Origin: Scyliorhinus canicula
Lineage: Eukaryota
Assembly (NCBI RefSeq): GCF_902713615.1
Contig: NC_052158.1
Location: 33,459,990-33,523,989 of the forward strand
Direction of reading: 5' to 3'
DNA: 64,000 nucleotides
Positions 2,857-56,271 of this stretch are shown in pieces. The first letter of the stretch is position 1, and each line of letters begins with the position of its first letter. The notes beneath the pieces were generated by a model. It saw only the letters and a program-made list of their open reading frames with translations, was not told the DNA's origin and did no database searches. The position numbers and the translations under genes were made by a program.

Positions 2857-2956
2857 GAGGAACTCCAATTGCAGCGAGGAGAGGGTAGTAAACCTTCTGT
2901 AAGTCAACGATGAAATAACTTCTCTTCCATTTGTCTGTTCTGATAGAGCCACTCAT
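2857..2956 (-). CDS. GPR139/GPR142-like GPCR, coding exon 1 (copy A); exon 2 expected left of the window
   Basis: MSGSIRTDKWKRSYFIVDLQKVYYPLLAAIGVP followed by a phase-1 donor C|GTAAGT (intron starts 2856). The ATG used by copies B and C is ACA here (2936-2938), but an in-frame ATG lies at 2956. Upstream and intron sequence are homologous to copies B and C. Confidence 0.75.
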
Positions 2957-3529
2957 CCTTCGTGTCAGGGGTGATATTGCCGCTGACACTAAGTGCTATA
3001 ACACATTCAATGGGTCTCTCCTAAATAGAAGAGGGAAATCCCCCAGTGGCAGAATTCAGTTCCATGGAGACTGTTCTTAATTACAGTCAACGAAAAAAAG
3101 TTTCAGTTAACCCCGGTGATTCTGATATGTTTATTATCACAGTATATATTTGATCATGGATCAAATATGTGCCCTTGGATCTTATAAATGTCCACCGTAC
3201 TTGCAAGTAAAGCACACCTCATACCCAAATCAATCATTTCCTTCAGTTGTCTGTCTCGTCAGTTGGCGATTTGCATCTTGGTGCTCAACGTTCGCTGCAA
3301 CGTTGCCTGGAATGACTCACAACCGCACACTCCTCCCTGCATCTGATGTAGGGGAAGAAGTCGTTGAGGAAATGTAGGAGTTTCTGAACTCTATTTTCTC
3401 TTGACCTATTTGTAGCTGGCTGAGCCTTCCATTTATGAAAGCATTCCTTAATGACCCACCAAACAGTGGACATGGTGGTCAGTGATAGTTCCTTATGCAC
3501 TGATATGATTTGAGTTTCGCTGGCAAGAA

Positions 3530-4770
3530 AGGCATTTATTGCCTATCACTAACTGTTCTTTACAAGGTGGCAGCGAGCTGCCTTCTGGAACCACAGCAGT
3601 TCATCTGGTATAGGTACACCCACAGTACTATGAAGGAGAGAGTTCCATGGATCTAATCCTGTGACGGTGAAAAAACGATGGTATAATACCGAAACAGTTT
3701 TGTCAGGGGCTAGAGAGCAACATGGAGTTTTTTGTATCCTCATGAATCTTTTGTCCTTATCCTTCTCGATGGTACTAGTTGTGGGTTTGGGTTAAGCTTC
3801 TTTCTGAGAAGCCCTGGTGAGTTTCTGCTGTCCATCCTGCAGACGATACCCACTGCTGCCACCGTGCGACTACTGGAGTAAGGGAATATTTATGAAGGAG
3901 TGCCCCAATTATGCTAGTTGCTTTCTCCTCATGGTGTCGAGCTTCTGGGGTATTGTTGGAGCTGCACTCATCAATGCCAGTGAGCATTTTTAGCATTCTC
4001 CTCAAGTTTGAAACGCAGATGATCGGAAGGCTTTGGAGAGTAACGACATGACGTCCTCGACGCAGGATTCCTTGCTGCTGTCCTGCTCTTGCAACCACTG
4101 TATGTATCTGGCTAGTCGAACTCCGTTTCTTGTCAAGATTATACCCACGGTGTAGGTAGTGGTGGTTTAGTGACGGTAATTCCATTGAATGTAAAGAGCA
4201 ATTATTAGACTTTCGTTTGTTGGAAATGCCTGGAATTTGTGACAGTAATGTGACTTCCCGCTTTCCAACCACAGCCCGGAAATAGCTGGCCATTTTTGCA
4301 TATAGAGATGGGCGCCTTCAGAACTTGGGAAGTCAGACATGATGCTGAACATTACGTAATCAATAAGAAACTGTCCACTCGTCGGACATTATGTTGTGTG
4401 GAGGTAGTGATGAATGAGCAGAAGATGTTTGAGCCGACGACAGTCCCCTGATGTACTATTGCTTTGCTGTCCTGGAGATGAGATGACTGAACTCCAACAA
4501 ACACAACCACCATCAGTTGAGTTATATATGAGTCCAAACAGCAGAGAAGGTTTCCCCTAACACCCATTGACTAAATTTCTGCTAGGACTTCTTGAATCCA
4601 CAGTCTCAAACGCGGCCTTCATTTCAAGGGCAGCCACTCCCACCTCATCTCTGGAATTCCGGTCGCCGAAATACGTTGTAATGAGGTCATGAACTGAGTT
4701 GAACTAGTGGAACATAAACTGGTGAAAGTGAGCACGTTATTGCCACGCAAGTGCGACCTGATTTACTGTT
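3530..4770 (-). mobile_element. Old non-LTR retrotransposon (CR1/L2 group) remnant
   Basis: Shares the ..gcagctccaacaa.ac.c.a.. and cactacctacacc blocks with 26040-26920 and 57300-58390; heavily decayed. Confidence 0.55.
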
Positions 4771-5671
4771 GATGACGCCATATTCAAACCTCAATACAAT
4801 ACATTCCTTTTGTCCACATCACATGTGCATCCTTCATAAATAACCAGTAAGTTGGTGTAACATCATTTCACTTTCACGACAGCATGTTGACTCTACCTGT
4901 TTCCCGAGATATTCTCCATTTGCCTGCTGTAACATATTAAACAATGGATTCAAACTTTATTAGTTAATTCATTTTTCCTACTATTGATGTGAAGTTCTAA
5001 CTCCATTAGAACACCAAAGGACAATGCAAAGTACAGAACAGGAACAGCCCCTTCGGCCCTCCAAGCCCGTGCCGAACATGCTGCCCGACAAAACTACAAT
5101 ATTCTACACTTGCTGTGTCCGTGACCCTCTATTCCCATCCTATTCATGTATTTGTCAAGATGCCCCTTAAATCGTCCCTGCTTCCACCACCTCCTCCGGT
5201 TCCAGGCACCCACTACCCTCTGTGTAAAAAGACTTGCCTAGTACATCTACTCCAGTACAAAGATGTGCAGGTTGGGTGGATTGGCCATGAAAAATTGCCC
5301 TTAGTGTCCGAAATTCTATGATTAACCTAGGACAAACGTTTGGCGCAACATCGTGGGCCAAAGGGCCTGTTCTGTGCTATATTTCTCTATCTCTAAAACT
5401 TGACCCTCGCACATTAAACCTATGGCCCCTAGTAATTGAACCCTCAACCCTGTGGAAAAGCCTCTGACTATCCACTCTGTCTATGCCCCTCATTATTGTG
5501 TAGACCTCTATCAGGTCTCCCCTCAACCTCCGTCGTTCCAGTGAGAACAAGCCAAGTTTATTCAACCGCGCCTCATAGCTAATGCCCTCCATACCAGGCA
5601 ACTTCCTGTAAATCTCTTCTGCACCCTCTCAAAAGCCTCCACCCCTTCTGATAGTGTGTGGATCAGAATTG

Positions 5672-18845: not shown

Positions 18846-18889
18846 TCCATGATACACTTTGGGGTTCTATAAACCCTGGCCCATAACAA

Positions 18890-20860: not shown

Positions 20861-21844
20861 GTGGGTTATCTAATTTCGTAGATTGTTTGACCTATTTTGG
20901 AAACATATACGTGGTTCAGAAAACAAGCGTGAGCCTCAGCTTTCCACGGTCCGATTTTTTATTTCTCCACTTTACTCTCATGTTGAACTCTCTATCCGTG
21001 ACCCACCATATTCATGGCAAGGAGCACAACGTAAGCTGGTGTGGCTAATACCTCATATTTTGATTGGAAGATTTTCAGCATCTGGAATCAGCACTGAATT
21101 CAATTCCTAATCAATATCGCTGCCATATTTGGTCTCCTGCACTTTGGGATAAATTGCCCTTAGTGTCCAAAATTGCCTTAGGGGATAGGGTGGGGGTGTT
21201 AACCTTGGGTAGGGTGCTCTTTCCAGGAGCCGGTGCAGACTCGATGGGCCGAATGTACATAGAACTGTAAATTCTATGAAAAAGTCTCGTAGTTATATTG
21301 TTCTTTTATTTTGCTTTTGGACGGTAATTGTTCATGGCTTAGTAGTTGCCCTCCTCCCCGCAGACACGTTTTTTTCCTGTTTCGTGACTACATTTTCTGG
21401 CCTTAAAATTCTCTATCTTTTTGTTATTTAACATCGCCTGCCCTCCATCCCATTACGCCGCTTCCGTTTTATTCGTGCTCGAAGCCTACTGTATCTCTAA
21501 CATTACCGACTTGTTATGAACGGTCACCAGCCTGGCCCGTTCACTGCCAATTATCACGCTCTCCAGCGAGGCGGAGAACAAGAGTGTGAGGGATTCTGTA
21601 ACTCAGTGCTGGGCACCCAAATGCAAACCAACACCTAACAGGTCAGATGGCTGACGAAAAACGGACCACGGTTGGTCGTTTTCGGATGCTTATCCCAAGA
21701 ATATGACCTATGTTAGTGAAACCTATGCGAACATTTCGCACATGGTCAAGTGTATGCTGTGACCATAAATGTGTCAATATAAAAAGGGTTAACTGAACTT
21801 GTTTGTTCAGCGACAAAAAATAATATCTGTCTCCAGTGGGTGCA

Positions 21845-21875
21845 ATCACTGGAGATTTTCCCTGTTCTATAAATA
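21845..21875 (+). promoter_or_regulatory. Putative core promoter of GPR139-like copy B with TATA box
   Basis: TATAAATA at 21868-21875, about 80 bp before ATG 21951, inside a block conserved upstream of all three exon-1 copies. Confidence 0.5.
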
Positions 21876-21950
21876 AGGGACTCACCAATGCGTCTAGTCT
21901 CACCCTGAACATCATTTCTGGCTTTCAGAGGGACCGCAGGCTTCGGAGAA

Positions 21951-22032
21951 ATGGATCACTGGAAAATATATGATTTTGTCATTGATTTAGAAAGGATTTA
22001 CTCTCCTTTAGCTTCGGTTATTGCTGTTCCTG
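21951..22032 (+). CDS. GPR139/GPR142-like GPCR, coding exon 1 (copy B); no cognate exon 2 found
   Basis: MDHWKIYDFVIDLERIYSPLASVIAVP then G|GTGAGT phase-1 donor; 82 nt, the same length as copy C. Confidence 0.7.
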
Positions 22033-22739
22033 GTGAGTGCCTATATCCCGTTATTAATGCAGTGAAATATATTGAAAGGCAAAATCCTAAATCAGTAAGT
22101 CCTGCTATTACTTTTATTCATAGAAAGCATTAATTCTTGTGGCGAATTCATTTCAATTTGATTGGAACACGGTAGCCCACCGATTCGTATCTCAACGAAT
22201 GACGTACTCCCACTTTCACCATTTCTACCAGCAGATGTGTTCTTCTTACGATTCAAAGTGGCCTCGAGTTTCAAACCTAGATAGACATCAAAAGTTTGAT
22301 TCTCGATACAGGCAAGGATGCCGACTATTAGAAATACTGGTGGTAAACTTAGATGGCAGATAGAATATTAAGCATTTTAATGTCTCGCAATTCACGTTGT
22401 CCTCACGTTCTGCCATCTCTGACTTCCCACCATTTTGTAGATGGTTTGCGATCAGAAAAAAGTGTTTTTTCCTCCAAAATATACGTTTATTTTCCTTTGT
22501 CATTGACATTTAGTGTAATCCATCCCAATCATCCGTTAGAAACCGACTAATTCCATGCTGCCTATGATAGGTGGGCGGATCTCGCACTCAGTCCAAGAGG
22601 TAACTTTCTGCCAGCTACCTCTATCTTTTCGATGAATGTTTCTTGTCATCTTCACTGTTCGCTGCAACGTTCAGTTCCTTTCACTGCAATAGGAACGAGA
22701 CTGTCTGACCTGCAGCATTGTTCCCCTGATGTTTTGTGA

Positions 22740-29905: not shown

Positions 29906-32063
29906 ACGACGTCATTTGTGTCTTTCACTGAAAATACAATGGTTGCGGGATGGATTAGATTTTTCAAAACTGACATCGATGTACTTTTGGCAGCAAAGTA
30001 TGTAGCAAAAAACATGTATATGGCGCTGCAGCCCAAATCAGGCATGCTGTAATCGGAGGGGTTGGGTAAGGTTGAAAGCCTAAATGGACCTTTATTTGTG
30101 TTCAGTCAGGGAACAGAGTTGTAACAGGGAATGAGAACGGATCAGTGTGAATGAAGGGAAGTTGACAGCTAGAATAAATAATGCATCAGGCATTTCCAAA
30201 TAATCCCCACAATGTATGGGGAAAAGAAAAGTGTATTTGTTACAATGAGCACAAAGAAATAGAAACTCATATGGAGAATATGGAATGTTGGCACGGAAGT
30301 GGCATGTAAATCCAAGATTCATTGGCGAATGGCAGTGTATGCTGATGTGCTATTTGCACTGATGAGTTATTTGCCATTCCACAATGATAACGGTGGCCAC
30401 ATTTTTCTCAGTCGTCAAAATATTTACTCAAATGATGAATCCAGGCAAATTTTCATTAAAACTTATGGAACCTAATCTCCAGCACGATTAGAAACTGGAG
30501 AAAAATATGCAAAAAGTGCTGGAAATACAGGGCCGAACAGAGGACCTCCAAAAGAACAATATCTTGATGTCGACATTTCAGACAGAAGTCTCAAACCATC
30601 ACCGTGATTCCCTATGTCTTTTCCTGCAATACCCTAGCAGTCTCATCATGTCCTAGGCCTAGGCATTATGTCAACAGTTGGGAATAATGGCCAACTACCT
30701 GTAGTAGAGGGAAGTATCGAGAGGGGACACGCATAAAGAAAGAAAAGATAATTAATCATTATATTCTCTGATTTTCTGTATTCCGAATATATGGGTTGGT
30801 GATGCCATGGAATGTTTTCACGTAAGTGATAGTGTTCAGCAAAATAGAATAGACAGATGAAAGGGGGTAAATTGAGCAAAGATGTACTCATAGCAGGGAA
30901 CTTTAATTGACAGTAGCATAGTGGGAAGATAGAATTACATAATCGCTGTGCCGCTTATCTGATTTATGTTGACATTGCTTCCCTGGTTCCAGAAACCCAA
31001 ATGATCCTGCGTCCTCACAGGACGTACCGTAATGGAAGGCCACCGGCAGAAAGCTCCTTCGAAATAAGATACATGGGCTGCCTTTGCAAGTATAATAGCT
31101 CCCAGGCGATCCTGAAGACTCCCAATTGTACTCGCCTTTGTGAGGCCATCCAAATTGAAGGGCGATATTCACTCCTCTGTCTCTCGTTGACATAGTGTCA
31201 AGATCACTCTTCCTACTCCTCAATAGGGCAAGCCGTTGAGGTTGCTGGCGAAACTGTGGGTTAGCAGTTATCCTTCGGTAGATCAGTGTAAAAAACCTTG
31301 CGGTATTGATATTGTATCGTCTTTCTGATGCACTTGTTCCACAATCCACGAAAAGAAATTCTAAGCGCGTTGTCCATTTTATTTTTCAATTTATTTTCCA
31401 GTATCCAATTAATTGCAAATACAATTAATACATATAGAATTAATCGCATTACCTTCTCGTTCTAATGCAGTACTCTGCTATGCACGTTGAAAACACTGGT
31501 TCAACCTTATATTTCATAATTTATGCTTCATTGTTTGGTCTTGTACCCTATAATTGCACCTCTTTCTCAAACGTTATCTTGTTCGCCGTGTCGCTATTTC
31601 ATTCCTCGCTGTCCCTTCTTCTTTCACTTTTGCTCTCCTTGTTTTTTTTATTGGTTTTCTCTTCCCTTTTCAACTGTCGCTCTCTGTCATCTAGCGTTCC
31701 TTTTTTGTTTCTACGTTAGTACCATCTTAATGCCTTTGGTGGACCAAAGTTCCGGTAGTATGTTTGTTCAATATTGGGCGTTCGTTCCTAGAAAGTTAAG
31801 AGGTAAAAAAAATGCTGTATAAATATAAAGTACATGACATGGAACACTGAAGAATATTGTAATTTACTTCTCTCGTGTTGCATAAATTTCGACGTTGAAT
31901 TTGAAATACCAGCCTAACACAAAATATCCCTGCTTTTCTAATTATCACATTCTCATAATAGATGCGAGCTATATAATGATAGAAATGAGCGAATTAAAAC
32001 TAGTCTAAACTATAACCCCATAACCATCTATTTCTGATTCTGACGGAGATCATGTTGGGCAAA

Positions 32064-32151
32064 ATGGTTCTAATTTGTGAGGGAGGACTCACACTGGATC
32101 GTCTGCTCTCCTTGCAACACTTCCTAAATGATAGGGATTTTCAGTCTATAC
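32064..32151 (+). CDS. Predicted upstream coding exon of M2-like copy 1
   Basis: aaaATGG at 32064 (also an in-frame ATG at 32052), open MVLICEGGLTLDRLLSLQHFLNDRDFQSI, then C|GTGAGT donor; phase matches the acceptor at 32763. Confidence 0.5.
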
Positions 32152-32260
32152 GTGAGTTTGTGGTCTGGATACATAACTTTAAATTAATCAAAGGAAAAAA
32201 GTTTTATGTTATCCTAGATATATAAATATCTAGAAACAGCAAAGCAAACCCAGAACGAAA

Positions 32261-32763: not shown

Positions 32764-34136
32764 TGCTCACGACATATCAGCGGGAAAGGCTAGCAAACTC
32801 CACAGAGCTAAACGAATTTCGCAACAACCTCACAGGCTTCTTTGATACTGAAAGAGTGAGTTCTTACAAAATGGTCGAAGCGGTTTTCATTGTAATTGTG
32901 ACAGTTGCTTTAAGCTTGTTGACTATCATTGGAAATATTCTGGTCATAGTTTCTATCAAAGTAAACAGACATTTGCAAACTATGAACAACTATTTTATTT
33001 TCAGCTTGGCCTGTGCTGATTTAATTATTGGTGTATTCTCTATGAATCTATACACCACTTACATCGTCATTGGCTCCTGGCCATTGGGCCCAGTGGTTTG
33101 TGATTTGTGGCTTGCTCTAGATTATGTTGTCAGTAATGCATCTGCCATGAACCTCCTGGTCATCAGCTTTGACCGTTACTTCTGCGTGACAAAGCCCCTC
33201 AGCTACCCCGTGAGGAGAACAGCGAAGATGGCAGGAATGATGATCGCAGCTGCCTGGGTGCTTTCGTTTATCTTGTGGGCTCCTGCCATTCTCTTCTGGC
33301 AGTTCATTGTAGGGGAGCGCACAGTCAGTGAGGGTGAATGTTACGTACAATTCTTCTCAAATCCAGCCATCACGTTTGGCACGGCTGTAGCTGCCTTTTA
33401 TCTCCCTGTGTCAATAATGATGACTTTGTATGTACAAATAGCTCGTGCCAGCAAATGTCGAATGAAAGACAATAAAGAAGAGCGTGAATCAAGCAATGAC
33501 AGCATTTCACCCAGTCTAGTGAAAGACAAGAGAACGAAGCTGAACAACAATATCATACCAGGTGTTCCTGATGGTTTTTCACAAGTCAAACTACAGAATG
33601 ATATAGTAGCAGGAGAAATAATAATTAGTAATTGTGAGAAAGAAGATAAGGAGCTCCCCAATGCGTCAAATTACTCCAGCGTACTCCCATCAAAACCAAA
33701 GCCGACTGGGACGAAACAAAGGAGCATAGCTCTTTATATGACGCAAACCTGCTCCATGACGCGCAGCTCTAAACTCTCCTGCATAAAGATAGTTAAAGAT
33801 AGCGAGAGCAGAGCAGAAAATAAGATCATTACACTGTACAATCCTTCTGTGAAGAAGAGGACAGGGGCTGTGTCCCGTGAGAAGAAGGTGACAAAGACCA
33901 TCCTGGCTATACTTCTGATATTTATCATTACCTGGACCCCATACAACGTCATGGTGCTCATTGACACCTTCTGCTCAACCTGTGTCCCCAGCACGGTCTG
34001 GACTATTGCATACTGGCTCTGTTACCTTAACAGTACCATCAACCCAGCCTGCTATGCACTCTGTAATGCTACATTTAAGAAAACTTTCAAGCATCTTCTG
34101 TTGTGTCAGTATAAGAAAATTGGTGCAACAAGATAA
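32764..34136 (+). CDS. CHRM2: Muscarinic acetylcholine receptor M2-like, copy 1 (main coding exon; the ORF track starts it at 32658)
   Basis: Intact 7TM with [88 protein letters not shown] and C-terminal YKKIGATR. M2-type ICL3 (SPSLV..NNN). May be a paralog rather than the true ortholog. Confidence 0.95.
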
Positions 34137-37992: not shown

Positions 37993-39979
37993 ACATTCGT
38001 CATGTCTCAACTGCAGATGACACTCTAACGGAGGATGGGACAATTCACACATCGCAAGATGGGGAAGAATTCATAATTCTGAAAGTATATTGGATGGCTT
38101 ATCACATCCTTTGTTCATTGCAATATTGCAGCAGTTGCCATGCTGACCAGTTCAACTGGATGTTCTTCCATTCCAGACAATTTCCCCAAGATCCTGCATC
38201 GATGTGGGGAGCCAATTCCTGTAATCTGGCTAACTTTAGGTGTCAGGTGTGCTTGACGAGGAGAGGAGTGGACATTATAGCATACACCTGACACAAATTT
38301 GAGGCATGATTAAGTATATGTTGTGACGATAAAGGCCTTGGGTTAGAACGGGTTAAATGAAGCTGTTTGTTCAGTGTTCGGAACCGATATTAGTCCCCAT
38401 GGAACTGAACTGTCTCACTGGAGGATCCCCTCTACTATTAATGTAAGACACCTTTCCATGTGTTATATCACTTAGAGTCTGCGGGAGCACCGCATTTGGC
38501 ATGAATACTGATAAGTGGCTCCACGGGAATGGACCAATGGAAGAAAATTATCTTTGCCATTGTCTTAGAGAGTATTTACTATCCTCTTCTTGCTGCGATT
38601 GGCATTCCACGTAAGTCTCTAAATACAGGCATTAATTGGATAACTGTAACCAACTGCATTTCTGCCTCATCATTTTAAGGCAATAGATCCAGCCATTATA
38701 ATGAAGCTATTTCGTTAAGCTTTTGATTTCAGTTGATTTGATTAGGTTTCAGCAGTCCATTCATTTTGTCTCAACGTTTCACATATCGTCACTGCTATCA
38801 CTTCTGCCACCAGATGTATTTTTCTGGATTGAATTAACTGCAGTTTCCAACACTGTTTAGGAATGAGAAATCCGATTCTTCTAGACAAATTTAAATATGC
38901 AGTAATGGAACATATCTGTGCATGTAGGAAATAGAGATACGCTTTGTGTCCCAATGACTCATGGTCAAGCTTCAGTCATCTACTTCATTCTCTGTCTTCA
39001 TTGATTTCCTGTAAAACTGCTAACCTTTATGTTTTATTTCAAACCAACATTATTTTTCATGTTATGTTTGGTTTTATTGAATATTAGTTACTGTCTCCTG
39101 TAGATAACACTACCACGGATAAAATTCAACAAATTATGTTGCTTACTACAGCGATGGGACTGCGTCAGACCCGTGGATACCATTCTATTGGGTATAAATC
39201 CCTGAATACTTAACTGTGCATATTTATTGTTGTCTAAAATATTTGTTGTAACCCTCGACCCCTTTTAATGGAACATGAATTTATTTCCAACAGTCTTTCT
39301 ATCTACTTAATTAAAGTGCTGTTCCGCATTTGTTACTTCATCCTAACTATTAATCTCTAGTTAACATAGGACATAGAACAGTACAGCACAGAACAGGCCC
39401 TTCGGCCCTCGATGTTGTGCCGAGCCATGATCACCCTACTCAAACGCACGTATCCACTCTATACCCGTAACCCAACAACCCCCCCCCCCCCGCCTCCATG
39501 CTACCGTGCTGCCCAAATGTTTGTGATTATTGAATGGTAATCACTGGCCCCAGCATAAAGCACAGTCACAGGTACAGTTGAATGTTAATCTCAAATGCAC
39601 AGCCCTGCATCAGTCAAGGATGATGGGAATACAGTTGGTGAAATGAGAAGAAATCTTGTTTTTTCTATTCATTCAGCGGGTATGCACTTATTACCTATTA
39701 CAAATTGTGAAGCAGGATGTTTACTAAATTCTTGAACCGCCACAGTGCATGTTCTGTAGGTACAGGCACAATGATATCTTAATGTCTGTGCGTTCTGCTG
39801 GGGCCAGTGACTACCATTCAATAATCACAATCATTATTCCCATGCATTTGCTCTACTTATCGTTTTCCATGATATATCAACTGCACATTTTTGAAATATT
39901 TATATTTAAGATTACATTTTTAAATTTATGAATGGGACGTGGGCACTAATGCTTTGTCCAGCATGGATTTATGATCCCC

Positions 39980-41147: not shown

Positions 41148-42935
41148 AGAAACATGGAAACATATAACAATACAGCACAGAACAGGCCCTTCTGCTCACG
41201 ATGTTGTGCATAACCTTTGTCCTAGATTAGGAACAAATTATCAACACCCCATCATTCTCGCATAATCCATTTACCTATCCAATAGCCGCTTGAAGATCCC
41301 TAATGTTTCTGACTCAACTACTTCCACAGGCAATGCATTCCATGCCCCCACTACTCTCTGGGTAAAGAAATTACCTCTAACAGCCCCCTTATACCTTACA
41401 CCATTCATCTTAAATTTATGTCCCCTTGTAATGGTTTGTTACACCCGGGGAAAAAGTCTCTGACTCTCTACTCTATCTATTCTCCTCATCAGCTTATAAA
41501 CCTATATCAAGTCGCCTCTCATCCTTCTCCGTTCGAATGAGAAAAGGACTGGCACCCTCAACCTTTCCTCATAAGATGTACTCTGCATTCCCGGCAACAT
41601 CCTGGTAAATCTCCTTTGCACCTTTTCTAAAGCTTCCACATCCTTCCAAAAATGAGGCGACCAGAATTGCACACGGTATTCCAAACTTGGCCTTATTAAG
41701 GTTTTGTACAGCTGCATCATCACCTCACGGCTCTTAAATTCAATCCCTCTACTAATGATCGCGAGCACACCATAGGCCTTCTTCACAGCTCTATCCACTT
41801 GAGTGGCAACTTTCCAAGATCTATGAATATAGCCCCCAAGATCTCTCTGATCCTCCACGATGCCAAGAACCCTACCATTAACCCTGTGTTCCGCATTCAT
41901 ATCTGTCCTTCCAAAATGGACATCATCACACTTTTCAGACTTTCAAACTCCATCTGCCACTTCTCAGCCCAGCTCTGCATCCTATCTATGTCTCTTTGCA
42001 GCCGACAACAGCCCTCCTCACTATCCACAACTGCACCAATCTTCGTATCGTCTGCAAATTTACTGACCCACTCTTCAACTCCCACATCTAAGTCGTTAAT
42101 GAAAATTACAAACAGCAGAGGACCCAGAACTGATCCCTGCAGTATGCCACTGGTAACGGCTCCAGGCTGAATATTTGCATTCCACCACCACTCTCTGACT
42201 TCTATCGGTCAGCCAGTTCGGTATCCAACTGGCCAAATTTCCCACTATCCCATTCCTCCTTATTTTTTGCATGAGCCTACCATGGGGAACCTTATCAAAT
42301 GACTTACTAAAATATATGTACACTACATCCACGACATTACCTTCATCCACATGCTTGGCCACATCCTCAAACAATTCAATAAGACTTGTGAGGCAAGACC
42401 TACCCCTCACAAATCCGTGCTGACTATCACTTATCAAGTAGTGTCTTTCCAGATGCTCAGAAATCCTATCCCTCAGTACCCTTTCCATTACTTTGCCTAC
42501 CACCGAAGTAAAACTAACTAGCCTGTAATTCCCAGGGTTATACCTATTCCCTTTTTTGAACAGAGGCGCGACATTCGCTACTCTCCAATCGCCGGGTAAC
42601 AGCCCTGTTGACAGTGAGGACGAAAAGATCGTTGCCAGCGGCTCTGCAATTTTGTCTCTTGCTTCCCATAGAATCCTTGGATTGATCCCATCAGGCCCAG
42701 GAGACTTGGCTATCCTCAATTTTTTCAAAATGCCCAACACATCTTCCTTCCTAACTAGTATCAGCTCGAGCTTACCAGTGTATTTCACACTGTCCTCTCC
42801 AACAATATGGCCCCTCTCATTCATAAATACTTAAGAAAAGTACTCGTTCAAGATCTCTCCTAGCTCTTCAGACTCAATACATAATCTCCCGCTACTGTCC
42901 TTGATCGGACCTACACTCACTCTAGTCATTCTCAT
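41148..42935 (-). mobile_element. CR1 LINE RT plus 3' tail, in the intron of copy C
   Basis: KSPGPDGINPRIL..QHGFVRGRSCLTSL..SKFADDTK..ERRRMRGDLI; same subfamily as 61697-63195. Confidence 0.95.
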
Positions 42936-43156
42936 ATCTCGTCATTTTGACCCTGTCTGTTAGTTTGCTTCATGACTCTTTTGTCAGTCGACAAAAGTTA
43001 TTTTTCTTTCTTTTTCAATGCTTCTGCCAAACTAGCATGTTTGCTGTCACCTTTAGTCGAATAAAGCTGAACTTGCTGCTAATTTGAAGAGTTGGGATTT
43101 GAATTTCAGAGTTGTGAGTTGAAGACAAAAAACTTTGTCCCACAGCTACATATATT

Positions 43157-43883
43157 GGGCGCGATACTCCACTGCCCACGACGGGTCGGAGAATAGCGGG
43201 AGGGCCATCCCGACATTTTACCCGCCCTCCCGCTATTCTGCCCCCCTCCCCCACGGACGCCCCATGAAACGAATCGCTGCTCGCCGTTTTTTAAGGCGAA
43301 CAGCGATTCTCCCCAGGCTGATGGGCCGAGGTCCCAGGCCTTTACAGCCATTTTCACGAACGCAATCACACCTGTTCTCGCCGTTCTTGAAAACAGCCGC
43401 AAAGTGCCGACCCGGACAACCATGGCACCGATTGGCATGGCCGCACCACAGCCGTGCCAAGGGTGACATGGGCCTGCGATCAGTGGGCACCGATCGCGGG
43501 CAGCGGGTCCTATACCCCCACACTATTTGTTCCTCTGCCGCCCCGCAGGATCAGTCCGCGGGGCGGCTGAGGGGCATGACGGCCCGCACATGCACGGGTT
43601 TGACGCATCTGCGTGATGACGTCATCTGCGCATGCGCCTGTTGGAGCCGTCCAACACGCGCATGCGCATCTGATGTCATCGTGCGCATCAGCCGCCGTGA
43701 CGCTTGGCGCGCGGGCTTAGCGATGGTTGCTAAGCCCTCGATGCCATGCTTCACGGGGCCGTGATGCTATCCCCGCCCAGGGGGGAGAATCGGGTCCCGG
43801 GTGGGGACGCGGAGGCTGCCGTGAAACACGGGCAGTTTCGCGGCAGCCTTTACGACTCGCCGCAATTCACGCGAATCGCGCCC
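43157..43883 (+). mobile_element. GC-rich non-autonomous Harbinger-type element A
   Basis: TIRs GGGCGCGAT(A/T)C..GAATCGCGCCC; 3-bp TSD ATT at 43154-43156 and 43884-43886; non-coding and internally palindromic. Confidence 0.85.
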
Positions 43884-43894
43884 ATTGTGACACT

Positions 43895-44604
43895 GGGAGT
43901 GATTCTCCGCTGCCCACGACAGGTCGGAAAATAGCGGCAGAGCGTTCCCGACATTTTTGACGCCCTCCCGTTATTCTCCCCCCCCCCCCCAGACCCCCCT
44001 CCCGCAACGGCCGCCCAACGACACGAATCGCTGCTCGCCGTTTTTTACGATGAACAACGATTCTCCCCAGGCGATGGGCCGAGTTCCCAGGTCTTTACGG
44101 CCGTTTTTACGGCAGCAAACACACCTGCTTGCTGCCGTCGTAAAAACGGCCTCAACATGCTCGTTCTGAGCATCCAGGGTCCCGATTGGCACGGCAGTAC
44201 CACGGCCGTGCCAAGGGGGGCATGGGCCCGCGAACGGTGCCCACCGATCGCGGGCAGTGCGTCCATAACAGACGCACTCTTTCTCCCTCCGCCGCCCCGC
44301 AGGATCAGCGGCCGAGGGAGATGACGGCCCCGCGCATGCGCGGGTTGGAGCCGTCCAATCTGCGCATGCATGGCTGATGTCATTGTTCACGTCAGCAGGC
44401 GTGATGCTTGGCGCGCGGACGTAGCGATGGTCGCTAAGCCCGCTATGCCGTGCTTTACGGGGCCCCGCTGCTAGCCCCGCCCGGGGTGGGGGGCGGGGGG
44501 GGGGAGAGAATCGGGTCCCGGGAGGGTGCGCGGAGGCTGCCATGAAACACGGCCAGTTTCACGGCAGCCTTTACGACTCACCGCATTTGTGGAGAATCGC
44601 GCCA
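43895..44604 (+). mobile_element. GC-rich non-autonomous Harbinger-type element B, in tandem with A
   Basis: GGGAGTGATTCTCC..GGAGAATCGCGCC; colinear with A; TSD not preserved. Confidence 0.8.
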
Positions 44605-44609
44605 TAAGT

Positions 44610-45070
44610 CTGAACATGGTGTGGATGATGTATGAGTCGTTGAAGCTGATTGGTTGCCCGTGTTGCCAGTGCAGCATCTTCCGCATGCATACGTTATCTG
44701 ATCAGGGCATGCCGCGTTTTTGTGTTGAACTTCAGTCTTGGTAGGTTTAGGAGATTCCCGTGCGATCTTATGTGGGGGTATATTTCGATGATGGCACAAA
44801 AGGCATAGGATGTGTGGGACGGTCAAAAGTCACCACAGCACAAATAATACCATATATCACCAAATGTTTTCTTGTATTTTGGATGAAAAAGAACATGACG
44901 AAGCAGAGCACAGAGGAATCATGGACCTTTGAACCCTGTCTTCTGTTGGTACATCTAATGCAACATCACCAGCATACAGAATGTTACACATCAGAATAGC
45001 CACAGTATTGCCAGGCCTTTCAGACCTAATAGTTTCACGAATTTCCGAACCAATCATTTGTGGATTCATT
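44610..45070 (-). mobile_element. RTE-clade RT fragment
   Basis: ILYAGDVALDVPTEDRVQRSM resembles LLYADDAAL.A.TE..LQRLM. Confidence 0.65.
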
Positions 45071-46309
45071 ACTTATGAAACAGAAAAAAATAGGTCAATA
45101 GGGCAGAGAAGAAAACCCGGATAGAAACAGTTCAACATATTACCGGATGTTGGCAAATATGTTCATATCTCAAACAGTGTAGAGTGAAATTGTTAACTTT
45201 GCGTCAAACACGATTTGTAATTTCCTTCTTTGTATCTCTTTATCATAGCTAACATAGTGACAATTGTGATCCTGTCTCTGGGAAAGTGTAGTATTTCCAA
45301 ATGCGTTACACATTATCTGGTGGCCATGGAAGCGGTGGATCTATTGTTTATTATTATCGACATGATAATAAGACACATCACAATTGTTGATGAGAATAAT
45401 TTTCTTTTTGTGCACGTCATCTCTACGTGTAATATTCAATTCGTTCTGCTGTACATAGCCAAAGACTGTTCTGTCTGGTTTATCGTCACTTTCACGTTTG
45501 ATCGATTTCTAGCAATTTGTTGTAAGAAGCTGAAAATTGGATATTGCACTGAGAAAACTGCAACAGTGGCTCTTGGAACAGTGACAGCCCTGAGCTGTTT
45601 AAAAGCTATCACGTCGTTCTTTATGCTAACCGATCGATTTTGGCTGTGGATCGCGCCCTGGCTTTGTTCTGTACCAAGCAATCTAACAGAAACACGATTC
45701 TGGTCAGTCGTCAAGTTGCTACACTACATTATCAACTTGGCAGTCCCATTTGTACTGATTCCACTGATCAATGTTTTCACAGTTAGACATATATTATTGT
45801 CAAGCAGACGGCACAGGAGATTCCATTTTTGCTGAAATTGGGAGAGTCCTAGAGATCCAGAGATGAAGAGTCGAACGAAATCCATCATTATATTCTTTCT
45901 TGTGTCTCGGAATTTTATCTTCTTATGGTCAATTCCATATGGGTTCGAATTTGGTTCTTAGGCGGTGAGTCTGTATTGATGCCTTACGTTGTGCAGGAAA
46001 TTTGTTTCATGTTGCAGCTCCTGCGTTGTTGCATGCATATTTGTATCCATGCCGTGGCTCAGAATATGTTCCGACTGACAGTCGTTAAAATATGCAATGA
46101 AAACCTTGTTCACTCAAATTTTGAAACTCATTAAATAATTGATGGAAACAGAGGAGTTAGCGTATTTTCATGAATTATAGTATAATTTTTGATCAAGTAA
46201 CTCTGCCCCAATTCGGAGAGATCTGTGTGTGTGCATGAGTGTGTGTGGTGCGGGTTTGTTGTCCCCTCTCCCCCCCCCCCCCCCCCGCCTCCCCGCCAAC
46301 CCACAGCAA

Positions 46310-47130
46310 GTGAAATCCATTTGAAGGATCAATTAGAAATACTCAACACAGGGTAGCAAGGAATTACAAGAGGACAGTTAAAACCTTGCAGTGTAGACAA
46401 ATTATTTTCAAACAGAACAGTTAAATTGGACATGGTACAAATTGGTAGTAGAACTCACCAGTTGCCTGAAAGTACCCAGTCCATGTAGAATCGAGGAACG
46501 AAAGGACGTTGAGACACTATCACAATTATGATCACATTGCTTTTGACAAAGAGATACAAAGAGGGAAATTATATCGCAGGCTGGGAGGAAACTTATCAGT
46601 TTTAAACTGCAGTTATTGGGATATGAAGGGGTTCCTGTGATGCAAAGAAGCACATCAAGAACTGTTGCCCCATTGTTTAGCAGGGCCATAAAAAGGCAAA
46701 TCACGCACTGGGCTTTGTTTCTTGGGAAGTCAACAGAAAATCAGAGAGGTTATTTTAAACCTGTATAGAAAGTTGTTTAGATTCCAATAGAGCACAACTT
46801 CCAATTATCGCTGTCTTATAACAACAGAGAAGAGATAGTGGAATTGGAGAGTCACTGGAGAACATTTACGTTCATATTACCAGATATGTGTGGCTGTGCA
46901 TAGAACGAATGGATTAACTAACTCTTTTTTTCCCCTGAAGATCAAAAGCTTGCATTGCGGCCTAGGAGAAACGTTACAATGCTCCAATGTTTTAATTGAG
47001 TAGATACGTCACGAAGATCATTTTTAATTTCGTGGGGAGCGTCATATTTACAGGGCATCGACGTTAGAGTCAAGAAACAAAAATTCAGAATAATGTGGGA
47101 TTCGTTGCTGCGAATTGAAGTGAGTAATAT
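46310..47130 (+). mobile_element. Very old CR1 3' remnant
   Basis: Blocks such as gaggttattttaaacctgtatagaa..ttggttag and gagaacatttac resemble the CR1 C-terminus. Confidence 0.5.
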
Positions 47131-47193
47131 AATTGTACTATCCACAAAATGTACTGGAGGATCATTCCAAGTGGCATGATCTTCCAAACCCAT

Positions 47194-48152
47194 GGCGCCG
47201 CATTCTCCGTCGCTCGACACACGTTTTCTGGTGGGGCGCACCACTGTTGGTGTCGGGACCCTCCGTCCCGCCAGACGGCCAATGCGGGGGGGTGATTCTC
47301 CGCACTCACGACGGTGCGGAGAATAGCGGGGGTCGTAAATTTTTATGGCCACGCTAGTCTGACGCCCTCCCGCTATTCTCCGCCCCCCCACGCCCGCCTC
47401 CCGACACGAATCGCTTTTTTAAGGCGAATCGTTTTTTTACGGCGAGCAGCGATTCTCAGCTGGCCGATGGGCCGAAGTCCAAGCCCTTTACGACCGTTTT
47501 TAGGACCGTCAAACACACCTGGTCTGACTGTTCGTAAAAACGGCCGTAAAGTTGGGATCTGGGGAACCATGGCACCGATTGGCATGGCAGTACCATGGCC
47601 GTGCAAAGGGTGCCTTGGGCCCGCGATCGGTGCCCACCGATCGCGGGCAGCAGGTACTTACCCCGCGCACTCTTTGTCCTTCCGCCGCCCCGCTGTATCC
47701 ATTCGCGAGGCGGCTGAGGGGCATCCCGGCCCGCGCATGCGCGGGTTTTGCGCTAATGCAAATCCGCGATGACGTCATCCGCGCATGCGCGGGTTGGAGT
47801 CTTCCAATCCGCACATGCGCGGTTGACGTCATGTGACGCGTCAGCCGTCGCAAACTCTGGCAAGCGGGCTTAACGAAATTCGTCAAGCCCGACATGCCGG
47901 AGTTCATGGCCGCGGCATGCTAGCCCCGACCAGGGACCAGAATCGGTTCCCGGTCGGGGGGGGGGGGGGGGGGGGGGGGGGCGGAGGCTGGCGTCAAACC
48001 CGCCCGTTTTTGACGCCAGCCTCACGATTTCTCCAGGTTTCGGAGAATCACGCCCGCGGTTTCCCATTGTGGGCAGCGCCACAATGGTCGGGAAATGTCC
48101 TGGCGTGGGTACACTGCCTGGGCAATGGAAATTGCCGAGAGCGCAGAATTAT
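47194..48152 (+). mobile_element. Short MITE split by element C
   Basis: gccaatgcg|..|gcggtttcccattgtgg rejoins across element C; related to 60030-60210. Confidence 0.6.
47287..48055 (+). mobile_element. GC-rich non-autonomous Harbinger-type element C
   Basis: GGGGGTGATTCTCC..GGAGAATCACGCCC, flanked by GCG (47284-47286 and 48056-48058); same family as A and B. Confidence 0.85.
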
Positions 48153-48259
48153 CTTTTTGACTGAGAAAAGGTGAGAAAAGACTGTGAAGGACGCGAGCAG
48201 CAGCCTCATGCGAGCCCCATCGCCTGCGAGGTCCCCTCAGTAACTCTTAAAAATATATC

Positions 48260-50428: not shown

Positions 50429-53400
50429 TATTAGTAAACGTAGATGGGATGATATGGTTTTGCTGAAGCACTGGGACGGGAGGTGAAGCCCATTCGGAAA
50501 ACAGGACAGGCAGACTTATTCGCAGATTTACCAAACTACATAACATTGCTTCCGCATTTTGTCTTAGCTAATAAGTCACTGGCCAGGCCTTGAATGTGTG
50601 TGCTGCTGCCAGGTGGCATCGGTGAAGTTTATGCCTTTCCGTTTTCCACATTCATCTTTAAAAACAATGGTCTATTTCTTCATAAGATCGAGAATTCTAT
50701 TGGGCCTCAAGTATAATATTTCGGACCAGTCTGCTTTTTTGTAGCCAATCTCGGTCAAAGTCCTGGGCCAGTCACCTCTCTGACCATCGAAGGAAGTTGG
50801 AATACCTGATGATGGTAGCTGAATGGAAAAGCCAAAATACCCTTGTCAAAATGTGATATCCGGTTTATCTCATCAGCTGGGTGGACGCTTGCTCCAAAGT
50901 CAACTATTAAACCCTTCACTGAAGTACATGGAGTCCCTAACCTTAGAGGCAACACCTGTGTCCAGTTGCAGCTGCTTGCCATTTAACTGCACCTTCTCGG
51001 CATTCGGCGCCGGTTAACGGCGCTCATCTCATGGGGACCGGTTTTGCCAAGTTGACCAGACAGCAGGTTTGTGATGCTTGGTGCAGAGCGAAGCCAGCAG
51101 GGTACATTCAATTCCCATACTGGTTGAAGTTATTCAGGAATACCCGCCTTCTTAAAATTGTCCCTCGCCTGAGTTGTAGTGATCGATTGGTTAAATCTCT
51201 CCCACGCACAGTCGGAAAAGCACTCTTTGGCCATCTGGAATAATTGCGACTTTACACTTGTAGACTAAAATACGCACCTCATACAGGGATTATGCAGTAG
51301 TTTATACAGTGCCAGTCGACTTGATCAGATTTGCACTCTGCACTGATGCTAATTTTCTGTTGTTATGTATTGCCCAGTCATGTTCCCTCTCTTTAGGCAA
51401 CAGTGGCACTCTATCTCTCCAAATGTGTATTAATTCTCCACACCCAGAGCAAATACCTTATCAACTGAGGCAAGTACGCTTCCTGACATACTGTTTCGCA
51501 GTCAGGAAATTGTGCTTGAGACCTGCCGTGTGACAATCTGTGCTCTACTCAGCGACAGGATTCTGCCTAACATGGTGAACATATGTATATTCTGAAAGTC
51601 GTGGGAATATTTTTTCAACACTCTCCATGGCGGGAGACATTTCTCGTGCTCATGTGAAATCAATGCCTGGTCCAGCAAGCAAATGGTGCTGTGTGGTGTT
51701 GTCAGTCGCGCCACATGCCAATCTGTGCCACAACATATCATTGAAGACATCCCCAAGTCCCCTTAGTCGCTAACATGTTTTAGATTCACCACAAAGGAAG
51801 CCATCGATTCCCATGGACCAAAAACTCTCGTGTCGAACTTGAAGCACTGAAAAATGGCAGACGGTTTTTGACGGAAAATAGGACTTCACAGGTTGTACTA
51901 ACCCGTTGTACAAATTAATACGACTGCATCCAGGACAGTAAGGTTCCCGATAAGGTGATACATGTTATTTGCATCGATGCACAGCAGGATAGCCCTATAT
52001 ATAACCCGTGTCAGTAATTCTATTCGCCATAAAATAGAATCAGAACTTCTTGACACACCGACTTCGGACCTCAGCATCTGCATCGTACAGATTGCCACTC
52101 CAGAACAACCGCATGAAGTCTCCATTTTTGTTATTTTGCGCTTTGGCTTTGCACTTAAGGGCGTTGTCACTTAAACAGCTGAGTCTGCAGCTTGTCAGCT
52201 GTGCGTCTATGCACCAATCAACTGCCCATCCCCTTCCCCCGATCATCCCTGTTATGTACAGGTAGAGTGTCTGTTGAATTCTATTGAATTTCTGATCTTT
52301 GATACTCCAAGGCTTGTGGAGCCGCAACTGCCAGCTCGAGAGCAATGCATCCCGTTCTTTATGTTTCAAGTCAGTTCTCACTTAAAATAAACATCTGTTT
52401 CAATTTGATAGATTTCAGGACAATTATTCTGAACTACATGTGGCTCTAGACCCACATCATTCTGTTGTAAAATGCTCCTAGATTAAGAGCAATTGGGGAT
52501 AGGCAAATCTTCGATGCCGACATACCATGAATAAAGAAACACATGCCGAAATGCTGAACAATGCATCATAGCCATCACACAGTATAAAGGGTGGCACTGC
52601 ACGACCCGTAATGATTGTTGATAAAGCTCTGGTTTTTCATCACTTTATGTCATGCAGGGGTATGAGTTCTTGGAGGACCTTCTGAAGACTAGTGGAAATT
52701 TCATGCTCTCTTCAAGTTTGCTCTTTATTTTAATGCACACGTTCTACAGTACAATGAGTAGATTGTTTCTGAACATTTTTCTTCACTTCGCTTCAAATGT
52801 TATTTTGCTTTCTGCACTTCAATCCAAACATACATAAACTAGTGTGAAGCAATTACATTATTTTCTGCTCCTACTTTGTCTATCTATGTTGTGCATATTA
52901 ACAATAATGGTTCAACATTTTACGCCATAATTTGTTTGCGTTTGCTCCCGTTGTATTTTACTCTCTAGTTTTCACTCTTAGTTTTTATTTTATTTTCATG
53001 CTACTATTGGCATCCGAGCTTGCCCATTTTTATTTTACTCTCATTCTCTCCTGTTCCCCCCCCCCCCCTTCCTTTGTTACCTCAATTTTCCGTTATTATA
53101 TTGTTTATCCTTCATTTCTCAGCTTTTTTTCCCGATGAATTATCTTCCAATACCGTGATTTTGTAAGTGCATTAGAGGCGCAGGTGGGGCGTGGCGTAAT
53201 GATATTGTTCCTTGGGCTGGTTATCCAGAATGGCTACGGAATGTACTCAGCCTGCATTTTGTATCCCACAGCAGACAGTGAACTTTAAATTAAACTAGAA
53301 ATCTGTGATTAGAGGTCCAACGCGCAGTTCATTATTGTCCTATAGAGGGAGCAGAGATGAGTGGGATGACTGAATTCCAGAGGGCTGTACAAACTGCGTC

Positions 53401-53429
53401 AATAAGTCTGTCAATAAGTTACAGACCCA

Positions 53430-53660: not shown

Positions 53661-54054
53661 GTATAATACACTTAATATATACAGTTAATACAGTATTCTA
53701 CTTCATAGAAGTTATTACAGTCCATTTTTATGTGTTTTGCCAGATAGCATTCCAATTCTGTTCTCCCTTTATTCATCAGTTTATTGGCCTTCATTTGCTG
53801 TGTTCTAAAAACCTTCCAATCCATACCATTTTGAATAACTTTCTTCGGATTTACCTTTAATCTTGTGCAATACATAACTTACTTCATCATCCATCAGGGG
53901 CTAACTTTGCTTTTGGTTTTCGACCTTGAAGGAATATATAGGTGTAGAAAGTTGAGTTATTACTTTGTGAACAAGGATCATTGCCTGTGAACTGTCATGA
54001 CCTATAACGCCTTTTTCCAATCTAACTCATCGAATTTGTCCCTCATGCCTTCAT

Positions 54055-54284
54055 TTTTTCTTATTTTTATAAATTTAGTGTACCCAATTCATTATTTCCA
54101 ATTAAGGGGCAATTTCGCGTGGCCAATCCACCTAGCCTGCAGATCTTTGGGTTGTGGGGGCGAAACCCACGCAAATTCGGGGAGAATGTGCAAACTCCAC
54201 ACGGAGAGTTACCCAGAACTGGGATCGAACGTGGAACCTCGGCGCACTGAGGCTGCAGGGCTAACCCATTGCGCCTCCGATTCC
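54055..54284 (-). mobile_element. HE1-head SINE with A-rich tail
   Basis: 15-bp TSD CCCTCATGCCTTCAT at 54040-54054 and 54285-54299. Confidence 0.9.
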
Positions 54285-54879
54285 CCCTCATGCCTTCATA
54301 ACTTCCTTCATGTAATTTTAACACCCTGGCTTCAGATTGAACTTGCCCACTTTGAATCACATTGTAAAATTCGACCACACTGTCGTCACTCATCCCGAAA
54401 GGTTATTGTTCTCTTAGTGCGCTTGGTTACTGGGTTACATGGATAGGGTTGACATGTGGGCTTGAGTTAGGTGCTCTTCCCAAGGGTCGGTGCAGACTTG
54501 ATAGGCCGAATGGCCTCCTGTTGCACTGTAAATTCTATATTGAACAGCTAGATTATTAATTAGCCATTTACGTTCTTTCTGTGAGGGAAGAAAAACACTT
54601 GAGCATCCCTTCTTCTTTCATCACGTCTCTCGGTGATATGGATTTTCAGTCTCAGATAAGTTTGTGATCTGGCTACATGAAAATAAAAAAATCAGTGGAT
54701 TGAAAGTATTCTTCGCTTAACAGGTTAGTATTTCGAAGGAAAAATATGTTTCACCGGGAAATATTGGATTGTTGTGTCAAAAAGTCTGCGAGACATGTTT
54801 GTAGTCAATTCATTTGACATCTTATTTAATGTTCTACATTTAGTACGTGTCAGTGATGTCTGAACATCAGAAGGGAGTG

Positions 54880-56271
54880 ATGGAAAACTCAGCAGAGGTA
54901 AATGAATCTCTCACCAATCTTACAGGCGGGTTTGACACTGAAGGAGGGTATCCTTACACCACGGTCGAAGTGGTCTTCGTTGTAATTGTGACAGGAGGTT
55001 TCAGCGTGATGACAATTATTGGAAACATTCTAGTCATTGCTTCTATCACATTAAACAGACAATTGCAAACTATTAATAACTACTTTATTTTCAGCTTGGC
55101 CTGTGCTGATTTAATTATTGGTTTGTTCTCCATGAATCTATACACTGTATACACTGTTACTGGCTACTGGCCGATGGGCACCGTGTTATGCGATTTGTGG
55201 CTTGCTGTAGATTATGTTGCCAGTAGTGCTTCTGGCCTGAACCTGCTGATCATCAGCTTTGACCGCTACTTCTGTGTGACAAAGCCCCTCAGCTATCCCG
55301 TGAAAAGAACAGCGAAAGTGGCAGGGATGATGATCGGAGCAGCTTGGGTGCTGGCATTTTTCCTTTGGGTACCGGCCATTCTCTTCTGGCAGTTCATCGT
55401 AGGAAAGCGAACTGTTGGTGACGGCGAATGTTATGTGCAGTTCCTCTCAAATCAGGCTGTCATTTTTGTCACTGCAATTGCTGCCTTCTATCTTCCTGTT
55501 CTCATCATGGTGATTTTGTATGTGCAAATATCTCGGGCCAGCAGGAGTCGTGTGAAGGAGGATATAAAGGAGACTGAATCAAACAAGTTTACAGTTGTTC
55601 GGAGTCTCGGGCGGAGGAAAAGAATGAAACAGAATAAGAATATACCAAATGGTACCGATAGATTGGCACAGGTCAAAAAGCAAAATGACAAAATAACTGG
55701 GGCAATGACAATTAATACTTGTGGCCACGCAGCTGATAAGGATCTGCCCAATAAGTCAACCTCCGGAAATATGGTCGAATTTAACCAGACAGATGGAGGG
55801 ACAACACAGGGGAGAATAATAAATGTCTGTAATGATGAAAGCCGTTTCAGGACGAATAATTCCGAACTCTCTATCATAACGATAGTTGGCAAATGCCAGA
55901 AAATCGCCGACTGTGACGGTACGGCAAAAATAGCATCAGACATCAATGGCAAGAATGGGAATGCCAGGGAGGTCACAGCACCCACAGTGTTGAAAATAAG
56001 GGGCGCTGTATCCCGAGGAGAAAAAGTTACCCGAACTATCTTGGCTATTCTCCTCGCTTTTATCATCACCTTGAGCCCATACTTCTTCATGGTACTCATT
56101 AGCACCATGTGTTCAATCTGTGTCCCCTACACAGCCTGGACTATTGGATACTGGCTCGTTTACATCAACAGTACCGTCAATCCAGCCTGTTACGCATTGT
56201 GTAATCCCACCTTCAAGAAAACTTTCAAGCATCTTATCCTGTGTCAGTACAAGTCCATCGGTAGAGCATGA
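54880..56271 (+). CDS. CHRM2: Muscarinic acetylcholine receptor M2-like, copy 2, with divergent binding pocket (463 aa; alternative ATG at 54856)
   Basis: Single-exon intact 7TM ORF: [89 protein letters not shown]; a paralog rather than a canonical M2. Confidence 0.93.

Follow-up and report, generated by a model that had tools for sequence, protein, structure and literature searches.

The M2 muscarinic acetylcholine receptor, the product of CHRM2, is among the most conserved and best-studied drug-target receptors, and GPR139 and GPR142 are orphan amino-acid-sensing receptors of an unrelated class A G-protein-coupled receptor (GPCR) family. Here we describe a locus of the catshark Scyliorhinus canicula at which elements resembling both kinds of receptor are interleaved. 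The stretch analyzed, hereafter called the window, covers 64,000 nucleotides of contig NC_052158.1 (positions 33,459,990 to 33,523,989, assembly GCF_902713615.1). Along these 64 kb, the elements follow one another as GPR139-like exon 1 A (minus strand), GPR139-like exon 1 B (plus), M2-like 1 (plus), GPR139-like C (plus), and M2-like 2 (plus). A first-pass annotation of the same DNA had proposed these five elements in this order and on these strands, and all of them were borne out, as was its description of a lineage-specific locus with two unrelated class A GPCR families. We consider it rather likely that the locus is part of a tandem array of CHRM2-derived receptors in S. canicula, in which GPR139-related gene heads and one dead copy are lodged as decaying passengers, not as working partners. 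The notable content of the locus is the CHRM2 expansion with its recurrent rewriting of the ligand-binding pocket.

Both M2-like genes of the window resemble CHRM2 in having M2 as their best match and in their single large coding exon, long third intracellular loop, D3.32 residue, and DRY and NPxxY motifs. Sharks and rays differ, however, in carrying many tandem copies in place of one gene (two after the teleost genome duplication), and many of the elasmobranch copies, including M2-like 2, replace W6.48, N6.52, C7.42, and other residues. By analogy, the trace amine-associated receptors (TAARs) also form a tandem array of intronless, aminergic-type class A receptors in which the pocket has diversified and the signaling motifs have been kept. 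The TAARs have another aminergic ancestor and have been shown to be olfactory.

Birth-and-death arrays, such as those of olfactory, vomeronasal, and immune receptors, share with the locus local duplication, a mix of intact genes, pseudogenes, and fragments, and transposon-rich spacers. The window has a G+C content of ~39 to 53% and holds many endonuclease and reverse-transcriptase fragments of long interspersed nuclear elements (LINEs), together with repeats resembling short interspersed nuclear elements (SINEs). The mix of intact, orphan, and pseudogene members that had been noted at first is indeed present at the locus, but unlike in such arrays, decay is limited to the GPR139-like side. Both M2-like genes are intact, and when an M2-like pseudogene fragment was looked for within the window, none was present.

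The GPR139-like family of sharks has GPR139 as its only solved relative. With GPR139 and GPR142 it shares a two-exon gene whose intron lies in the first transmembrane helix (TM1) after a G-x-P motif, and RefSeq gives its members the name "probable GPR139." Rather than a single conserved brain gene, however, it comprises hundreds of dispersed copies. It is also very distant (E 1e-7, 34 bits), an arginine of TM6 aligns with Phe in a family member, and the copies in the window consist of a pseudogene and gene heads.

CHRM2 expansion and pocket replacement in sharks and rays

Among the matches listed, M2-like copies number at least six in S. canicula, at least eight in Mustelus asterias, and at least five in Cetorhinus, in each case on one chromosome, with at least four in Hemitrygon and at least three in Hypanus. 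The expansion of CHRM2 thus extends to the basking shark and to stingrays. The mammalian baseline against which the locus had been viewed, with CHRM2 and GPR139 as single-copy, unlinked genes, is inapplicable to elasmobranchs, since both families are expanded in sharks and rays.

We placed the window genes in a maximum-likelihood tree of 52 sequences, which included 39 elasmobranch database sequences in addition to the two genes themselves. All elasmobranch M2-like sequences form one clade (support 100/100) apart from bony-vertebrate M2. With added outgroups, the elasmobranch clade remained whole (support 99) and the M4-type representative fell outside it, although that tree does not resolve whether the clade is sister to bony-vertebrate M2. 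Scyliorhinus and Mustelus occur together in each of at least six paralogue lineages, and the deep nodes among galean paralogues are poorly resolved. On the tree, rays and galean sharks expanded CHRM2 separately. M2-like 1 groups with a Scyliorhinus torazame protein (P0001) and then with Mustelus P0004, while M2-like 2 groups with S. torazame P0106, then with another catshark sequence (P0115), and then with Mustelus P0103. The two window genes are therefore not sister genes, and their split predates the divergence of catsharks and houndsharks.

The pocket was compared at 15 positions (D3.32, Y3.33, S3.36, N3.37, W4.57, T5.39, T5.42, A5.43, A5.46, W6.48, Y6.51, N6.52, Y7.39, C7.42, and Y7.43), the roles of which are established from M2 structures. 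All 15 positions are invariant in 81 non-elasmobranch M2 representatives, whereas variation occurs at 9 of the 15 in a set of 40 elasmobranch copies, of which 21 have lost N6.52. On the tree, N6.52 changed to F, S, or H at least seven times, and W6.48 changed to L or F at least four times. The DRY and NPxxY motifs are invariant in all 44 tabulated sequences. This pattern looks like repeated re-tuning of ligand specificity with signaling retained.

Neither this expansion nor that of the GPR139-like family is described in the literature that we searched, though the genes are annotated in RefSeq. Elasmobranchs are not covered in a published account of how vertebrate muscarinic receptors evolved (PMC6298421), and a paper on the catshark genome and senses (PMC11979771) mentions neither muscarinic receptors nor GPR139. 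Likewise, neither literature searches on GPR139 in sharks nor a review of GPR139 (PMC12208981) yielded a description of a shark expansion.

The two M2-like genes

The M2-like features of the window are as follows.

32052..32151, plus strand: short 5' exon of M2-like 1 (100 nt, ~600 bp upstream of the coding exon), with its ATG at 32052 and a GTGAGT donor at 32152
32764..34136, plus strand: coding exon of M2-like 1 (open reading frame [ORF] 32658-34136); Pfam 7tm_1, E 8.6e-65
54580..54659, plus strand: 5' exon of M2-like 2, homologous to the 5' exon of M2-like 1
54880..56271, plus strand: M2-like 2, an annotated protein of 463 aa; Pfam 7tm_1, E 1.8e-60

The best solved match of M2-like 1 is human M2, at 587 bits versus 507 for M4, with M1, M3, and M5 far behind. 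It has all 15 of the tabulated acetylcholine-pocket residues of human M2, and its DRY and NPxxY motifs are intact. Compared with its S. torazame orthologue (P0001), it is 93% identical overall and identical at 200 of 200 residues in TM1-5. The canonical ATG has been lost, reading AGG CTA where S. torazame has Met-Met, and a frame check showed that the short 5' exon splices in frame to the acceptor before 32764. The region of this 5' exon is homologous to sequence upstream of M2-like 2 (32076-32195 versus 54580-54699, 72% by blastn). Taken by its sequence, M2-like 1 is most likely a working Gi/o-coupled acetylcholine receptor.

A SINE-like repeat with a tRNA-like head (GGTGGCGCAGTGG...) lies at 32260-32490, in the short 5' intron of M2-like 1, and the 5' exon is ~400 bp further off there than in M2-like 2. 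The repeat has more than 10 copies in the window, with further ones at ~13.3, 17.6, 29.1-29.9, 34.5, 36.4, 48.8, 54.1, 57.6, 59.0, and 61.9 kb.

Human M2 is also the best solved match of M2-like 2 (541 bits versus 486 for M4, again with M1, M3, and M5 far behind). This gene keeps the amine-anchoring D3.32 and the DRY and NPxxY motifs, and its pocket carries the changes N3.37S, T5.39I, W6.48L, N6.52F, and C7.42V. The spliced ATG of its 5' exon is out of frame with the main ORF and meets a stop. Identity to its S. torazame orthologue (P0106) is 88%, with two core blocks at 94% (TM1-5) and 92%. M2-like 2 evolves faster than M2-like 1, and its signaling has most likely been retained while its ligand has changed.

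The two M2-like genes share ~59% protein identity and 77% DNA identity in the transmembrane core. At synonymous sites they have diverged by 0.74 overall (0.59 in TM1-5), and the ratio of nonsynonymous to synonymous divergence is 0.35 overall and 0.23 in TM1-5. Both genes are under purifying selection. A search of sequencing runs turned up none recorded as RNA that contains either M2-like gene, which is not evidence of silence.

The GPR139-like family in elasmobranchs

A profile search returned 1,879 proteins of the GPR139-like family at E <= 1e-20, and in Heterodontus alone its members occur on more than 20 contigs. The family structure consists of two exons, the first ending in "...YYP(L/I)LAA(I/V)G(I/V)P" in phase 1 and the second starting with "xN(I/L)VTIVILS." On the 7,461,842-bp Mobula hypostoma contig that bears the M2-like gene P0011, there are also two "probable GPR139" genes (P0217 and P0222). 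When the full-length relative P0123 was compared with solved proteins, GPR139 was the sole match (E 1.3e-7, ~34 bits). The shark family appears, on this resemblance, to be a distant offshoot of GPR139. The arginine of the human GPR139 TM6 motif "WAPR," a ligand-contacting residue in GPR139 structures, aligns with Phe in P0123 ("LWAMF"), and C reads "LWSIP" at that place. An opposition between Gq-coupled GPR139 and Gi-coupled M2, which had been raised for this locus, is not inferable, given that the shark family is distant from GPR139 and that the window copies are dead or truncated.

GPR139-like elements in the window

The GPR139-like features and the repeat lodged among them are as follows.

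2857-2938, minus strand: exon 1 A (2857..2956 with the upstream ATG), with a GTAAGT donor at 2851-2856
2957..3229, minus strand: 5' flank of A, promoter-like in character, with homology to the corresponding flanks of C and B; conserved blocks and a TATA-like motif are present
943..1670, minus strand: two stretches of the A intron, collinear with C intron 38955-39081 and 40739-41065
21741..22303, plus strand: head B, with 5' flank 21741-21950, exon 1 at 21951-22032, a GTGAGT donor at 22033-22038, and the first ~270 bp of the intron
38235..38616, plus strand: head of C, with 5' flank, exon 1 at 38529-38610 (ATG intact), and a GTAAGT donor at 38611-38616
41151..42824, minus strand: LINE fragment (reverse transcriptase) in the C intron; Pfam RVT_1, E 7e-12
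45248-46134, plus strand: exon 2 of C, a pseudogene, with an intact acceptor AG at 45246-45247 and a degraded TM7 motif

No GPR139-like element in the window is demonstrably intact: none of A, B, and C has there the intact ORF of a functional member of the GPR139/GPR142 lineage. Within the window, A and B are gene heads only, and exon 2 of A would fall outside it. Searches with 114 family proteins (tblastn) and with a family hidden Markov model (HMM) in six frames found no significant exon 2 behind B, up to M2-like 1, or behind A in the window. The two-exon structure of the family is recognizable in A and C by the exon-1 profile, in all three by the position of the donor, and in C by the acceptor and start of exon 2.

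The three heads have in common the start-codon position, an 82-nt exon, a phase-1 donor (GTAAGT or GTGAGT), the first part of the intron, and a promoter-like flank. The 82-nt exon encodes "...(I/V)Y(Y/S)PL(L/A)(A/S)(A/V)I(G/A)(V/I)P," and a three-way alignment of the 5' flanks contains conserved blocks along with a TATA-like motif. Where the family has its ATG (2936-2938), A reads ACA, and an in-frame ATG lies 6 codons upstream (2954-2956). In tblastn, the 114 family proteins gave short N-terminal matches at ~2.85 kb (minus strand), 22.0 kb (plus), and 38.5 kb (plus), which correspond to A, B, and C. Exon 1 of A is matched by 41 family proteins in tblastn (best E 2.5e-4). The exon-1 profile detects A at E 2.8e-9 and C at E 7.9e-6, whereas B is not significant (E 2.3). 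B retains its ATG and has one tblastn match (E 0.003).

In an ungapped scan of both strands covering ~128,000 positions, an 88-nt segment of C matched A at 64 of 88 positions and B at 59 of 88, compared with a best background of 45 of 88 (mean 22.5, standard deviation 4.2). Chance resemblance of B is ruled out by this sliding-window scan. It also bears out the caveat, raised earlier, that exon 1 of C is closer to A than to B. The identification of B would depend on its DNA match to A and C, on ~200 bp of 5' flank, on the ~270 bp of intron start, and on the single tblastn match. B is homologous to C both across the flank and exon (21741-22058 versus 38305-38636, E 4e-12 by sensitive blastn) and at the intron start (22156-22246 versus 38736-38825). 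By these comparisons, the three exon 1 copies are true paralogues.

The strongest homology among the heads is between A and C (2850-3229 versus 38617-38235, 69.6% over 388 bp, E 1e-31 by blastn). It reaches ~2 kb into the intron, inverted and collinear, and the two intron stretches involved are low-copy in the window (E 1e-7 and 7e-14 by sensitive blastn). Because these stretches are collinear, the duplication relating A and C would have extended beyond the exon.

Only C has a second exon within the window. The frame of this exon is interrupted by a TGA at 45833-45835 and shifts near 45913-45937; from there on, the TM7 region continues in another frame to 46134. It matches the family profile in three pieces in two frames (E 9e-81, 3e-11, and 3e-14) and Pfam 7tm_1 at E 8.9e-9. 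Its ORF (201 aa, 45230-45835) is a fragment of a seven-transmembrane (7TM) receptor with GPR139 as the sole, weak, solved match (E 0.006). More than 90 proteins of sharks and rays, annotated in RefSeq as "probable G-protein coupled receptor 139," share 55 to 60% identity with C, and exon 2 of C is 59% identical to P0123 by tblastn. Since C has only two disabling lesions in ~0.85 kb, we infer that selection probably maintained it through most of the period that followed the deep split of the M2-like genes and that it died recently.

The repeats around C deserve a separate description. The LINE fragment in its intron has a second copy at 62140-63195 that is 88% identical. The N termini of three RefSeq "GPR139" models from other sharks (P0123, P0150, and P0224) match LINE reverse-transcriptase ORFs at 42014-42491 and 62685-62975 (minus strand), and these gene models probably start in a transposon. 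A G+C-rich block of ~700 bp occurs three times (43156-43882, 43894-44603, and 47288-48054), on both sides of C exon 2. The copies are 72 to 75% identical, and each strand has long ORFs. Over 43000-48200, Tandem Repeats Finder gave no result.

Origin of the interleaved order

For the interleaving of GPR139-like and M2-like elements, the best reading is that it arose incidentally, through segmental duplication in a genome that is full of the GPR139-like family. That family is so numerous and dispersed that relics of it within other arrays are unsurprising. A DNA-level segmental duplication would have occurred where both families lay adjacent, and decay would have followed. A and C would represent an inverted duplicate pair, B would have lost everything past the start of its intron, and C, with two lesions only, would have died recently.

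Several observations weigh against regarding the GPR139-like elements as decaying passengers. A same-strand GPR139-like head followed by an M2-like gene is found twice, and six low-copy anchors are collinear between the first such unit (21.7-34.2 kb) and the second (38.3-56.3 kb). These anchors are the head, the intron start, an upstream block at ~-1.3 / -2.0 kb, the 5' exon, and two coding blocks. The divergence between B and C (K of 0.46 in the exon and 0.65 at the intron start) is near the synonymous divergence of M2-like 1 and 2 (0.59 to 0.74). In each of the three heads, the exon is open, the donor matches the consensus, and promoter-like blocks are conserved, which exceeds the expectation for long-dead relics. 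In Mobula hypostoma, a divergent two-exon 7TM gene of 327 aa lies 5.4 kb upstream of the M2-like gene P0011; it is not among the matches listed in the GPR139-like profile search. Finally, a test for neighbors within 10 kb, described below, covers annotated protein-coding genes only, so that it would miss relics and has low power.

The recurring order, the collinear anchors, and the similar divergence are what a joint two-gene duplication predicts. That a single duplication event carried both a GPR139-like gene and an M2-like gene is a serious possibility, though we put it forward tentatively and would not favor it outright. The six anchors cluster round each gene, and homology is lacking between the two halves of the units and in their outer flanks. 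A search for low-copy homology downstream of the two M2-like genes, and upstream of B compared with C, found only high-copy repeats. Two homologous pairs would fall in a given order and orientation by chance about 1 time in 12 to 1 in 24. Of eight M2-like genes examined across five species, seven lack any annotated gene within 10 kb; among these seven are both S. torazame orthologues and three other catshark paralogues. The amplification of a two-gene cassette that the first-pass annotation had suggested is thus favored by the collinear anchors and similar divergence, but M2-like 1 and 2 are not sisters and seven of the eight loci lack an annotated neighbor, which leaves it unproven. Its companion remark, that one simple cassette duplication is insufficient, is supported, with A and C forming an inverted, closer pair.

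We also attempted to date the A-C, B-C, and M2-like 1/2 duplications relative to each other by non-coding identity, but this proved unreliable, as the stretches that can be aligned have little length, lie close to the limit of detection, and are probably under constraint. Alignable non-coding stretches provide no neutral clock because they include conserved promoter blocks. Two low-copy matches (61-68%) lie outside the collinear chain, pairing 20687-20791 with 51090-51195 and 3713-4227 with 26212-26713. Old transposon fragments might account for these matches, as might additional rearrangement.

A stronger version of joint copying would be that a GPR139-like and an M2-like gene formed a selected, co-regulated functional unit that was amplified as a mixed repertoire of sensory or immune type. 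The repeated order and strand, the collinear anchors, and the matching divergence of the two pairs would all agree with such a unit, as would the 7TM neighbor in Mobula and the presence of GPR139-like and M2-like genes on a common chromosome or contig in Cetorhinus and Mobula. Both same-strand partners are non-functional, however, with C a pseudogene and B without exon 2, and the third head, A, is inverted and closer to C. Moreover, M2-like 1 and 2 are not sisters, most M2-like genes lack an annotated neighbor within 10 kb (seven of eight, as above), partners are unannotated in the sister species, and the anchors show two homologous pairs in the same order rather than continuous homology along a unit. 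We consider this reading unlikely. Going further still, the carcharhiniform repertoire could have arisen by repeated copying of a GPR139-like gene followed by a CHRM2-like gene, with the promoter-bearing heads kept to drive or gate the neighboring M2-derived receptors and the rewritten copies sensing new amines. If this were true, the gating could be, for example, a choice of one receptor in a sensory cell type, but the proposal is a long shot.

The remaining alternatives replace duplication with splicing or with an artifact. The sole exon 2 is preceded, on the same strand, by exon 1 of both B and C, and annotated isoforms exist for family members in several sharks. The two heads might then be alternative first exons of one GPR139-like gene, with M2-like 1 nested in its intron. 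This is very unlikely, as exon 2 is a pseudogene and both heads come with a promoter-like flank of their own and with homologous intron starts, a pattern that fits duplication of whole genes. M2-like 1, which has lost its own start codon, might instead have captured B for use as an alternative coding exon at the 5' end. B has an ATG, an open exon of 27 codons, and a phase-1 GTGAGT donor on the same strand 10.7 kb upstream, and joining it (21951-22038) to the M2-like 1 acceptor (32762-32764) keeps the frame (MDHWK...). Phase agreement is expected by chance in 1 of 3 cases, however. M2-like 1 also has a 5' exon of its own with an in-frame ATG, conserved beside M2-like 2, and the chimera would set half a transmembrane helix before the extracellular N terminus of the receptor, all of which makes capture highly improbable. 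The corresponding join of C exon 1 to M2-like 2 meets a stop and was rejected. An assembly mis-join of two unrelated arrays is barely credible: the region is rich in LINE and SINE copies, but no direct support for a mis-join was found, the 64 kb contain no runs of N, the interleaving involves four junctions and not one, and the independent S. torazame assembly places both M2-like orthologues on one chromosome.

Implications for shark and ray receptor repertoires

Sharks and rays have very few classical odorant receptors, and the M2-like copies are possibly an unrecognized receptor repertoire. The tandem multiplication of CHRM2, several independent times and with the same pocket residues repeatedly replaced (the W6.48 "toggle" and N6.52 among them), amounts to a natural experiment on how an aminergic receptor can be re-tuned. 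That GPR139-like relics are interleaved with the array is of interest chiefly as a clue to its growth.

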